The position numbers and the translations under genes were made by a program. A stretch of DNA of 60,868 nucleotides, counting the filler, from Schmidtea polychroa (taxonomy: Eukaryota): the NCBI GenBank assembly GCA_044892525.1. It is 3 parts of 3 records of this genome, joined end to end, with 100 filler letters (N's around TTAATTAATTAA, not from the genome) between each part and the next. Parts side by side here need not be neighbours in the genome. Positions count along the whole stretch, not along the records: positions 1 to 24,150 come from CM097885.1; 2 more parts are not named here. One strand, written 5' to 3'. Position 1 is the stretch's first letter, and every line of letters begins with the position of its first letter. Below, piece by piece: positions 930-18,086 of the stretch. The notes below the pieces were generated by a model that saw only the letters and a list, made by a program, of their open reading frames with translations, made no database searches and had not been told where the DNA came from.

Positions 930-1002
930 GTAATTATTCATTATTTAGGCCAATCGGGTTAGGGAGGGGCTGTTGGCTGACTATTGCTTTCTGGCACTCT
1001 GT

Positions 1003-4000
1003 GAATGGGGGGGATTGACGCTTTGGGTGAGTGAGGGGGATTGGCGCTTTGGGTGAGTGAGGGGGATTGACGCTGTGATTACCTATCCCTACTGTTGATA
1101 TGGCACCTATTGATTGGCAGTGAGTGAGTGAGGGGGATTGACGCTGTGATTACCAATCCCCACTGTAGATATGGCACCTATTGATTGGCTGTTAGTGAGG
1201 GGGGGATTGACGCTGTGATTACCAATTCCTACTGTTGATATGGCACCTATTGATTGGCTGTGAGTGAGTGAGGGGGGATTGACGCGGTGATTACCAATCC
1301 CTACTGTTGATATGGCACCTATTGATTGGCTGTGAGTGAGTGAGGGGGGATTGACGCTGTGATTACCAATCCCTACTGTTGATATGGCACCTATTGATTG
1401 GCTGTTAGTGAGGGGGGGATTGACGCTGTGATTACCAATCCCTACTGTTGATATGGCACCTATTGATTGGCTGTGAGTGAGTGAGGGGGGATTGACGCTG
1501 TGATTACCAATCCCCACTGTTGATATGGCACCTATTGATTGGCTGTGAGTGAGTGAGGGGGGATTGACGCTGTGATTACCAATCCCTACTGTTGATATGG
1601 CACCTATTGATTGGCAGTGAGTGAGTGAGGGGGATTGACGCTGTGATTACCAATCCCTACTGTTGATATGGCACCTATTGATTGGCTGTGAGTGAGTGAG
1701 GGGGGATTGACGCTGTGATTACCAATCCCTACTGTTGATATGGCACCTATTGATTGGCTGTGAGTGAGTGAGGAGGGATTGACGCTGTGATTACCAATCC
1801 CTACTGTTGATATGGCACCTATTGATTGGCTGTGAGTGAGTGAGGGGGGATTGACGCTGTGATTACCAATCCCTATTGTTGATATGGCACCTATTGATTG
1901 GCTGTGAGTGAGTGAGGGGGGGATTGACGCTGTGATTACCAATCCCCACTGTTGATATGGCACCTATTGATTGGCTGTGAGTGAGTGGGGGGGATTGACG
2001 CTGTGATTACCAATCCCTACTGTTGATATGGCACCTATTGATTGGCAGTGAGTGAGTGAGGGGGATTGACGCTGTGATTACCAATCCCTACTGTTGATAT
2101 GGCACCTATTGATTGGCTGTGAGTGAGTGAGGGGGGGATTGACGCTGTGATTACCAATCCCCACTGTTGATATGGCACCTATTGATTGGCTGTGAGTGAG
2201 TGGGGGGGATTGACGCTGTGATTACCAATCCCTACTGTTGATATGGCACCTATTGATTGGCAGTGAGTGAGTGAGGGGGATTGACGCTGTGATTACCAAT
2301 CCCTACTGTTGATATGGCACCTATTGATTGGCAGTGAGTGAGTGAGGGGGATTGACGCTGTGATTACCAATCCCTACTGTTGATATGGCACCTATTGATT
2401 GGCTGTGAGTGAGTGAGGGGGATTGACGCTGTGATTACCAATCCCTACTGTTGATATGGCACCTATTGATTGGCAGTGAGTGAGTGAGGGGGATTGACGC
2501 TGTGATTACCAATCCCTACTGTTGATATGGCACCTATTGATTGGCTGTGAGTGAGTGAGGGGGATTGACGCTGTGATTACCAATCCCCACTGTAGATATG
2601 GCACCTATTGATTGGCTGTGAGTGAGGGGGGATTGACGCGGTGATTACCAATCCCTACTGTTGATATGGCACCTATTGATTGGCTGTGAGTGAGTGAGGG
2701 GGGATTGACGCGGTGATTACCAATCCCTACTGTTGATATGGCACCTATTGATTGGCTGTGAGTGAGTGAGGGGGATTGACGCTGTGATTACCAATCCCCC
2801 CTGTTGATATGGCACCTATTGATTGGCTGTTAGTGAGGGGGGGTTGACGCTGTGATTACCAATCCCCACTGTAGATATGGCACCTATTGATTGGCAGTGA
2901 GTGAGTGAGGGGGGATTGACGCTGTGATTACCAATCCCTACTGTAGATATGGCACCTATTGATTGGCTGTGAGTGAGTGAGGGGGATTGACGCTGTGATT
3001 ACCAATCCCCACTGTAGATATGGCACCTATTGATTGGCTGTGAGTGAGGGGGGATTGACGCTGTGATTACCAATCCCTACTGTTGATATGGCACCTATTG
3101 ATTGGCTGTGAGTGAGTGAGGGGGATTGACGCTGTGATTACCAATCCCCACTGTTGATATGGCACCTATTGATTGGCTGTTAGTGAGGGGGGGGGTTGAC
3201 GCTGTGATTACCAATCCCCACTGTAGATATGGCACCTATTGATTGGCTGTGAGTGAGTGAGGGGGGATTGACGCTGTGATTACCAATCCCCACTGTAGAT
3301 ATGGCACCTATTGATTGGCTGTGAGTGAGTGAGGGGGGATTGACGCTGTGATTACCAATCCCCACTGTTGATATGGCACCTATTGATTGGCTGTGAGTGA
3401 GTGAGGGGGGATTGACGCTGTGATTACCAATCCCTACTGTTGATATGGCACCTATTGATTGGCAGTGAGTGAGTGAGGGGGATTGACGCTGTGATTACCA
3501 ATCCCCACTGTTGATATGGCACCTATTGATTGGCTGTTAGTGAGGGGGGGGTTGACGCTGTGATTACCAATCCCCACTGTAGATATGGCACCTATTGATT
3601 GGCTGTGAGTGAGTGAGGGGGATTGACGCTGTGATTACCAATCCCTACTGTTGATATGGCACCTATTGATTGGCTGTTAGTGAGGGGGGATTGACGCTGT
3701 GATTACCAATCCCTACTGTAGATATGGCACCTATTGATTGGCTGTTAGTGAGGGGGGGATTGACGCTGTGATTACCAATCCCTACTGTTGATATGGCACC
3801 TATTGATTGGCTGTGAGTGAGTGAGAGGGATTGACGCTGTGATTACCAATCCCCACTGTTGATATGGCACCTATTGATTGGCTGTGAGTGAGTGAGGGGG
3901 GATTGACGCTGTGATTACCAATCCCTACTGTTGATATGGCACCTATTGATTGGCTGTGAGTGAGTGAGGGGGATTGACGCTGTGATTACCAATCCCTACT

Positions 4001-16000: not shown

Positions 16001-17982
16001 TTACCAATCCCTACTGTTGATATGGCACCTATTGATTGGCTGTGAGTGAGTGAGGGGGATTGACGCTGTGATTACCAATCCCTACTGTTGATATGGCACC
16101 TATTGATTGGCTGTTAGTGAGGGGGGGTTGACGCTGTGATTACCAATCCCCACTGTAGATATGGCACCTATTGATTGGCTGTGAGTGAGTGAGGGGGATT
16201 GACGCTGTGATTACCAATCCCTACTGTTGATATGGCACCTATTGATTGGCTGTTAGTGAGGGGGGGGATTGACGCTGTGATTACCAATCCCTACTGTTGA
16301 TATGGCACCTATTGATTGGCTGTTAGTGAGGGGGGGTTGACGCTGTGATTACCAATCCCCACTGTAGATATGGCACCTATTGATTGGCTGTGAGTGAGTG
16401 AGGGGGATTGACGCTGTGATTACCAATCCCTACTGTTGATATGGCACCTATTGATTGGCTGTTAGTGAGGGGGGGGTTGACGCTGTGATTACCAATCCCT
16501 ACTGTTGATATGGCACCTATTGATTGGCTGTTAGTGAGGGGGGGTTGACGCTGTGATTACCAATCCCCACTGTAGATATGGCACCTATTGATTGGCTGTG
16601 AGTGAGTGAGGGGGATTGACGCTGTGATTACCAATCCCTACTGTTGATATGGCACCTATTGATTGGCTGTTAGTGAAGGGGGATTGACGCTGTGATTACC
16701 AATCCCTACTGTTGATATGGCACCTATTGATTGGCTGTGAGTGAGTGAGGGGGATTGACGCTGTGATTACCAATCCCCACTGTTGATATGGCACCTATTG
16801 ATTGGCTGTGAGTGAGTGAGGGGGATTGACGCTGTGATTACCTATCCCTACTGTTGATATGGCACCTATTGATTGGCTGTGAGTGAGTGAGGGGGGATTG
16901 ACGCTGTGATTACCTATCCCTACTGTTGATATGGCACCTATTGATTGGCTGTGAGTGAGTGAGGGGGATTGACGCTGTGATTACCAATCCCTACTGTTGA
17001 TATGGCACCTATTGATTGGCTGTGAGTGAGTGAGGGGGGATTGACGCTGTGATTACCAATCCCTACTGTTGATATGGCACCTATTGATTGGCTGTGAGCG
17101 AGTGAGAGGGGAATGGCGCTTTGGGTGAGTGAGGGGGATTGACGCTGTGATTACCAATCCCTACTGTTGATATGGCACCTATTGATTGGCTGTGAGTGAG
17201 TGAGGGGGATTGACGCTGTGATTACCAATCCCTACTGTTGATATGGCACCTATTGATTGGCTGTGAGTTAGTGAGGGGGGGATTGACGCTGTGATTACCT
17301 ATCCCTACTGTTGATATGGCACCTATTGATTGGCTGTTAGTGAGGGGGGGATTGACGCTGTGATTACCAATCCCTACTGTTGATATGGCACCTATTGATT
17401 GGCTGTGAGCGAGTGAGAGGGGAATGGCGCTTTGGGTGAGTGAGGGGGATTGACGCTGTGATTACCAATCCCTACTGTTGATATGGCACCTATTGATTGG
17501 CTGTGAGTGAGTGAGGGGGATTGACGCTGTGATTACCTATCCCTACTGTTGATATGGCACCTATTGATTGGCTGTGAGTGAGTGAGGGGGATTGACGCTG
17601 TGATTACCTATCCCTACTGTTGATATGGCACCTATTGATTGGCTGTGAGTGAGTGAGGGGGATTGACGCTGTGATTACCTATCCCTACTGTTGATATGGC
17701 ACCTATTGATTGGCTGTGAGTGAGTGAGGAGGGATTGACGCTGTGATTACCTATCCCTACTGTTGATATGGCACCTATTGATTGGCTGTGAGTGAGTGAG
17801 GGGGGGATTGACGCTGTGATTACCTATCCCTACTGTTGATATGGCACCTATTGATTAGCTGTGAGTGAGTGAGGGGGGGATTGACGCTGTGATTACCTAT
17901 CCCTACTGTTGATATGGCACCTATTGATTAGCTGTGAGTGAGTGAGGGGGATTGACGCTGTGATTACCTATCCCTACTGTTG
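1003..17982. repeat. ~17-kb tandem array with a ~68-74 bp unit (modal 71-72), roughly 240 copies, inside the KMT2C/D intron 930-18086
   Basis: Unit: GATTGACGCTGTGATTACCAATCCC(T/C)ACTGT(T/A)GATATGGCACCTATTGATTGGCTGT(GAGT)1-2GAG(G)n. Copy number is estimated from length divided by unit size, not counted. Confidence 0.99.
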
Positions 17983-18086
17983 GTGATTGCAATTACCAAT
18001 CAATAACCATTATTGTCGATGCTGCAACCTGATTGGATTATTATTTGTTGATATATTGATATCTTAACCAACCAAATGATTTCTAG

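Follow-up and report, generated by a model that had tools for sequence, protein, structure and literature searches.

The DNA analysed here is a 60,868-nucleotide stretch of the Schmidtea polychroa genome (assembly GCA_044892525.1), hereafter the window, of which positions 1 to 24,150 come from record CM097885.1. This part carries, on the + strand, a gene of the KMT2C/D (MLL3/4) type that is probably the orthologue of planarian LPT, and one intron of this gene, at 930-18086, consists almost entirely of a single ~72-bp tandem repeat. The intron is 17,157 nt long, with the donor GT at 930-931 and the acceptor AG at 18085-18086. We describe the array and its host gene, the RNA evidence that the intron is removed precisely, and the reasons for regarding the array as very probably a minisatellite that expanded within this one intron.

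A private minisatellite in an intron of the LPT gene

Frame 2 stays open throughout exon 361-929, which ends in phase 1; A929 together with AT at 18087-18088 makes an AAT codon, from which the frame continues into EHCICSLCERKGG. Pfam places a zf-HC5HC2H domain (ePHD, E 3.4e-11) just 5' of the junction and PHD fingers just 3' of it, and a second PHD cluster at 22138-23015. The best solved-structure relatives of the exon at 18087-18261 are MLL3 (2ysm, 2e-20) and KMT2D (9atn). In tblastn, KMT2C-like proteins of 3,361-5,320 aa align without a gap across the intron (for example P0003, at residues 340/342), and P0001, a 351-aa protein of a close relative with 80% identity in the ePHD, reads EADLSNEHCICSLCERKGG uninterrupted over the junction. 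A homologous-protein search with the ePHD exon returned nothing at E <= 1e-10. The succession of ePHD, PHD cluster and second PHD cluster seen by Pfam, PDB and tblastn is the domain order of the N-terminal half of KMT2C/D. A preliminary description of the window had called the gene KMT2C/MLL3-type and the splice sites at 930 and 18086 an in-phase join of the ePHD exon to the next PHD exon, and both statements agree with these results.

LPT and trr are separate genes of the MLL3/4 family in flies and planarians (PMC6128892). Four published Smed-LPT primers (supplement 1 of PMC6128892), each with 3-6 mismatches, match exons of the window, and their order and orientation are as expected; F and R fall in the two exons that border the 17-kb intron. 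This mapping identifies the gene as the putative orthologue of LPT of the congener S. mediterranea, corresponding to the N-terminal half of MLL3/4. In a tblastn search with KMT2C-like proteins, the 100 kb downstream gave no match to SET, FYRN or FYRC, and homology ended with an exon at ~31640-32080; the absence of these domains would fit the planarian LPT/trr split. The S. polychroa gene therefore shares with Smed-LPT its ePHD and PHD clusters, its primer sites and the lack of SET/FYR within the downstream interval searched; the two differ as orthologues of congeners, with ~80% identity in the ePHD region.

Tandem Repeats Finder (TRF) called the array at 1046-17982 with a period of 71-72 (144 also scored), 92-94% matches and ~235-238 copies. 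The array makes up 16,937 of the 17,157 bases of the intron (98.7%) as a single head-to-tail tandem repeat. Splitting at the anchor motif GATTGACGC yielded 238 full units of 68-73 bp each, preceded at the 5' edge by a few partial units of 26 bp, so that the earlier figures of about 99% of the intron and about 240 units hold on measurement. The units fall into 70 distinct variants, with a mean identity to the consensus of 96% and no gradient from the edges to the centre. Base composition sets the array apart from the surrounding DNA: its G+C content (GC) of 0.49 compares with ~0.28-0.31 around it, and its + (sense) strand is strongly biased towards G. Searches of the whole 781-Mb assembly with two 30-mers from the unit, at <=3 mismatches, gave 238 and 239 matches, all on the + strand; the counts in the window were also 238 and 239. 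The 72-bp repeat is therefore private to intron 930-18086. With a ~72-bp unit, within the 10-100 bp range, repeated head to tail, high identity between units, a wholly intronic position and a single locus, the array has the properties of a minisatellite. Its longest exact internal repeat measures 1,115 bp, and others of 0.4-0.8 kb recur at offsets of 3.1-4.4 kb. A simple higher-order repeat was rejected, as the order of the unit variants has no dominant lag (best autocorrelation 0.11) and only scattered block duplications are present. The repeat lacks a long open reading frame (155 aa at most).

Precise removal of the 17-kb intron

We aligned read contigs to 17900-18940, an interval that begins in the final unit of the array and continues through the unique intron tail into the downstream exons. 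Contigs of runs X7 (1,564 nt) and X8 (870 nt), from two separate studies, skip the GT..AG introns of 57, 52 and 66 nt and are therefore RNA-derived. Both alignments end exactly at 18087, and the 30-letter overhang, CAGGGCACACTCAAGAGGCTGATTTGTCAA, equals window positions 900-929; the X7 contig continues for 815 nt upstream of the 929/18087 junction. Neither run has an RNA contig covering 17983-18086, and the only array-derived RNA contig (X7) has a depth of 3 versus 244 for the exon contig. A 34-mer over the joined 929/18087 sequence is absent from genomic DNA throughout the assembly at <=3 mismatches. We rejected the possibility that the joined RNA stems from a processed or paralogous copy in the DNA: with the junction 34-mer absent as DNA and the downstream exon present in a single copy, the join must be made by splicing at the locus. 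Stable RNA thus joins 929 to 18087 exactly, and the 17-kb intron is removed precisely. The preliminary description had set this join beforehand as one of the outcomes on which its intron stood or fell, and the contigs of two studies bear it out.

The same data bear on the idea that two separate transcription units flank the array, an ePHD gene upstream and, downstream, a PHD gene transcribed from a promoter of its own; spliced RNA would then be minor read-through. Gene fission is known in this family (LPT/trr) and a 17-kb array could be a boundary, but the only RNA contigs on exon 18087-18261 run into exon 361-929 in both studies, one of them for the 815 nt given above. Moreover, the interval without RNA contigs, 17983-18086, is where the first exon of a downstream gene would lie, and homologues are continuous at the junction. 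We regard two units as extremely improbable.

The exons and introns around the array are collected in Table 1. The other introns had been described as mostly 44-57 bp. A small class does exist, and includes a 50-nt intron that, like the 44-nt one, is predicted from the DNA letters alone; however, the gene also has a 66-nt intron, predicted introns of ~0.43 kb and ~2.07 kb (frames and splice motifs) and gaps of ~2.7 and ~4.9 kb between exons detected by homology. A second array-filled intron had been placed at 21305-21860. Its 31-bp array is real and also locus-private, all 11 genomic matches lying within the array itself, but no GT start or AG end exists at those borders, and the array would instead lie inside an intron at 20072-22137, modelled from frames and splice motifs in partly masked sequence. 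Runs of N at 19596-19765, 20098-20368 and 20612-21093 fall inside predicted introns, so that the gene model is limited from 19547 to 22137. The Ala and Ser/Asn runs (AAAAAAAAATHHSSNSNSNSNSNSTSNS) that lie between the two PHD clusters are encoded by a (CAGCAA)n-type microsatellite at 18949-19074.

Table 1. Features of the LPT-type gene and its arrays in the window
Feature	Position	Strand	Evidence and remarks
Upstream coding exon	35..316	+	Frame 3, C2HC-like start of the ePHD region; open frame and AG/ and /GT boundaries, from sequence only
Small intron, 44 nt, GTAAGA...CAG	317..360	+	Predicted; frame restored between exons
ePHD1 exon, 569 nt	361..929	+	Pfam, tblastn; final 30 nt equal the RNA contig overhang
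Intron, 5' edge	930..1045	+	Unique sequence, then 26-bp partial units (1001-1074)
Private minisatellite, ~72-bp unit	1046..17982	+	TRF, motif splitting, genome-wide 30-mer matches
Intron, unique 3' tail	17983..18086	+	Acceptor TTTCTAG/; covered by the X1 DNA-like contig
PHD exon	18087..18261	+	Solved-structure match, RNA contigs; single copy in the genome
Small intron, 57 nt	18262..18318	+	Skipped by RNA contigs X7 and X8
PHD exon	18319..18505	+	Pfam, frame, RNA contigs
Small intron, 52 nt	18506..18557	+	Skipped by RNA contigs
Coding exon	18558..18701	+	RNA contigs
Small intron, 66 nt	18702..18767	+	Skipped by RNA contigs; missing from the preliminary description
Coding exon	18768..19124	+	RNA cover to 18940; 3' end predicted
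Second private minisatellite, 31-bp unit, ~17 copies	21337..21859	+	TRF; inside the predicted ~2.07-kb intron 20072-22137
First exon of the second PHD cluster	22138..22491	+	Pfam PHD, E 1.2e-14; tblastn, <=77% identity to P0007

Probable expansion and tolerance of the array, and its length

The sense strand of the array contains 349 donor-like GT[AG]AGT motifs, which fit the canonical metazoan donor consensus better than does the true donor, CAA/GTAATT, or the donors of the neighbouring small introns. Each unit holds two opposed CCAAT boxes (~460 over 17 kb) and two or three GTGAGT, the latter on the sense strand only. No AATAAA or ATTAAA poly(A) signal and no AG preceded by a pyrimidine tract was found on the sense strand of the array, and AGGT occurs nowhere on the sense strand of intron 930-18086. 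Recursive splicing via AG/GT ratchet sites was rejected on this zero count. TGTAG variants number 59 in the array, 32 of which sit 45-50 nt past a GTGAGT, a distance like the local small-intron size; the final decoy donors lie 149-153 nt upstream of the true acceptor. Retention of the intron would lead to a stop codon 29 codons past the end of exon 361-929. Outside the array, CCAATCA/TGATTGG is over-represented in 1-929 plus 17983-24150 (9 observed versus 0.8 expected) and in 24151-40000 (19 versus 1.7), with an excess of only ~2-3-fold in the flanking 50-84 kb. The enrichment of CCAAT and CCAATCA in the gene region beyond the array reaches z 5-17 and comes in part from other minisatellites.

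The explanation that we hold to be very probable is that a locus-private, GC-rich minisatellite, a macro-array of the variable number tandem repeat (VNTR) type, expanded within one LPT intron. It would have grown in place, in a region near the scaffold end that is rich in minisatellites, through slippage at the scale of the unit and through unequal exchange that duplicated blocks of several units; the exact repeats inside it, 0.4-1.1 kb long and offset by 3.1-4.4 kb, fit such block duplication. The intron would be removed as an ordinary long intron. In splicing by exon definition, the use of a donor depends on a recognised acceptor at the start of the same exon. The true donor would close a properly defined exon of 569 nt, and the 349 decoys, having no upstream pyrimidine-tract acceptor, would not be defined as exon ends and would be ignored. 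A sense strand without poly(A) signal, AG/GT site or pyrimidine-tract acceptor would be tolerated, and these missing motifs may explain why the array persists. In a genome of 28% GC it is striking that poly(A) signals are missing, and their absence would remove premature cleavage, the main hazard of a long intron. The array would then be tolerated filler, born of slippage and unequal exchange.

The preliminary description started from a compact-intron genome and proposed a splicing route different from that of the neighbouring introns. The premise fails, for the genome measures 781 Mb. Planarian introns, in a Dugesia/Schmidtea comparison, form a small class of <=316 bp plus a large class (10.64898/2025.12.11.693146); with both classes present, a long intron needs no unusual route. 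Nothing at this locus points to one. Long introns are routine in the organism, and AG/GT ratchet sites, the classical signal of recursive splicing, are absent. Repeat-driven intron expansion has been reported in the genus Schmidtea (PMC11410931).

Several points weigh against in-place expansion followed by ordinary splicing, or narrow it. Derivation of the unit from the adjoining intron sequence finds no support, since neither flank is significantly unit-like (5' flank score 14 versus a shuffle mean of 14.3; 3' flank score 20 versus 13.0 +/- 2.0, shuffle maximum 21). The exon-definition argument is established knowledge applied to a motif census. Assembled contigs reflect the dominant isoform only, and use of a decoy donor followed by decay of the product is possible. 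The density of minisatellites was judged on 174 kb around the locus alone. The existence of the array and its order of magnitude are well supported, whereas the exact 17-kb length rests on the assembly, and the summed word depth of array over flank (17900-17969) amounts to ~660-716x in run X1 and ~78-126x in run X5, versus 238 assembled units.

X1 and X5 come from two studies distinct from the RNA studies, and both seem to be partial or enrichment libraries. The DNA-like contig of X1 spans 17940-18940 with zero differences from the reference. That of X5 spans 17980-18940; before 17980 it has a partial unit and then ~15 letters foreign to the reference. As this contig links unit sequence to the flank, a second genotype also has units beside this flank. 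X5 departs from the reference at 18047, 18286, 18502 and 18833, by three single-base changes in all and by 3 nt inserted into the 57-nt intron. Both RNA runs share its T>G at 18833, so that the reference individual stands apart from the other samples. Summed contig word depth was rejected as a copy number, which the measure explicitly is not. The gap between X1 and X5 could reflect length polymorphism, enrichment of the array by library type or a depth artefact.

These depths could also mean that the array is present but in truth far shorter or longer than 17 kb, through over-expansion or collapse in HiFi assembly. The ratios of X1 and X5 do depart from 238 units in opposite directions, and the X5 letters do differ at the 3' edge of the array, but length polymorphism or library bias fits the differences between runs equally well. 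For the S. polychroa assembly schPol2, PMC11410931 describes hifiasm and Hi-C assembly of PacBio HiFi reads from DNA sheared to 14-22 kb, and its Table 1 gives a GC of 28.1%. As the longest exact repeat is 1,115 bp and the order of the 70 variants is non-periodic, reads of such length leave no ambiguity in tiling the array. We therefore consider a gross error in length unlikely.

The motif content of the unit invites a functional interpretation, in which the array is a cis-element: a platform for an NF-Y-type CCAAT factor, or a nascent-RNA scaffold loading U1 small nuclear ribonucleoprotein (snRNP), that tunes LPT transcription or protects the long intron from premature cleavage. The opposed CCAAT boxes and the sense-only GTGAGT motifs recur in every unit, and the CCAAT/CCAATCA enrichment described above extends into the gene region beyond the array. 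Array words in X1 are in addition ~3x those expected from 238 copies, although X1 contigs total far below the genome, maybe as an enrichment library, and X1 depth gives no copy number. Amplification of one unit would produce the same motif content as a by-product, and the repeat has neither a significant RNA fold (z -0.76) nor an Rfam family match. A cis-element of this kind is in our judgement distinctly improbable. For the array as an LPT-specific platform concentrating U1 snRNP (~350 sites, no poly(A) signal) or a CCAAT factor (~460 boxes), we see very little likelihood; if it were true, array length would tune the dosage of LPT, a stem-cell tumour-suppressor-like regulator, between strains.

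Regional context and known systems

The scaffold is 271.6 Mb long, and its end lies ~0.65 Mb from this locus. Within the 174 kb read around the locus, seven minisatellites of at least 0.5 kb were found, all between window -48 kb and +38 kb (86 kb), accompanied by (ATA)n tracts 1-2 kb long; in the 84 kb that follow downstream, no GC-rich minisatellite was found. Four of the arrays, with units of 72, 31, 155 and 46/183 bp, are held within the span of the LPT gene; these have a GC of 0.45-0.54 and a G-rich sense strand.

The two arrays upstream of the gene are both young. The first has 13.8 copies of a 58-bp unit with 99% matches, a GC of 0.66 and a C-rich + strand (L013:1786-2584, window -48214..-47416), and the second 12.2 copies of a 70-bp unit with 98% matches (L013:7436-8287, window -42564..-41713). 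Within or just downstream of the LPT span are a 155-bp unit in 4 copies (L018:2875-3496, window 27025-27646), a 22-bp unit in 42 copies (L018:8364-9298, window 32514-33448) and a 46/183-bp unit in 15 or 3.7 copies (L019:3150-3831, window 37300-37981). On the G-rich sense strand of the 155-mer and the 46-mer, CCAAT/ATTGG stands beside G runs, as in the 72-mer. (ATA)n/(TAT)n microsatellites of ~2.0 kb (L018:19-2039) and ~1.2 kb (window 29304-30460) lie between LPT exons detected by homology. The preliminary description had read the two arrays then known as repeated inflation of introns of one gene. Independent arrays do occur in other non-coding intervals of LPT; with two arrays upstream of the gene, however, inflation by tandem arrays looks regional and not gene-specific. 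Taken as a whole, the interpretation given there is partly supported.

Our literature search found no paper joining planarian, minisatellite and intron, and the LPT case appears to be undescribed. The word 'intron' is absent from the main text of the Smed-LPT paper (PMC6128892). Neither a new kind of element nor a new splicing mechanism is in evidence, and the locus is a clear but ordinary intronic minisatellite expansion. Its value lies in being an RNA-verified case of a gene that transcribes and excises an intron ~300x the size of its small neighbours. The load of decoy donors makes it a possible natural test of donor choice, by exon or intron definition, in an animal with two intron classes. 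The locus also flags a minisatellite-rich region near a planarian scaffold end and, inside LPT, a possibly length-polymorphic marker.

Among known tandem repeats, the satellites described in Schmidtea, namely the 158mer, the 159mer and the pericentromeric CL66/73/75/79 (units of 424-766 bp), form Mb-scale blocks at multiple loci (PMC13309565); by these descriptions they are set apart from a 72-bp unit occupying 17 kb at a single locus. The Drosophila Y-linked fertility genes kl-2, kl-3 and kl-5 have gigantic introns filled with satellites (PMC6508621, PMC11207136). As at LPT, transcription has to pass through an intron made up mostly of tandem repeats, which is then spliced out, and the remaining introns of the gene are small. 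The likeness, which the preliminary description had drawn with these Y loops, does not go far: the fly introns are megabase-scale versus 17,157 nt here, their simple satellites are genome-wide and shared with other loci whereas the LPT repeat is a private minisatellite, and they depend on a spermatocyte programme with specific RNA-binding proteins, nothing of which is indicated here.

Human classical minisatellites are GC-rich, strand-asymmetric and clustered towards chromosome ends. The planarian arrays resemble them in a GC of 0.45-0.54 within a 28% GC genome, in having one G-rich strand, and in the grouping of several unrelated arrays in ~90 kb at ~0.65 Mb from a scaffold end, which may not be a chromosome end. 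The difference is one of size, 17 kb being at the large end, and the likeness implies neither a shared core motif nor a link to recombination hotspots.

The closest known kind is the large, locus-private, lineage-specific intronic VNTR, exemplified by TRACT, a 30-bp repeat in intron 3 of human CACNA1C that extends over 3-30+ kb (PMC13131567, PMC11118589, 10.1101/311795). TRACT lies in a ~100-kb interval of its intron, whereas the planarian intron is almost all array; the host here is a chromatin-regulator gene of a planarian, and consensus donor motifs occur in the sense strand of the repeat. Lineage specificity and length polymorphism are established for the TRACT kind and are candidate features here. 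The two have in common a kb-scale head-to-tail array with a unit of tens of bp, confined to one intronic locus, complex in the order of its variants and removed by splicing.

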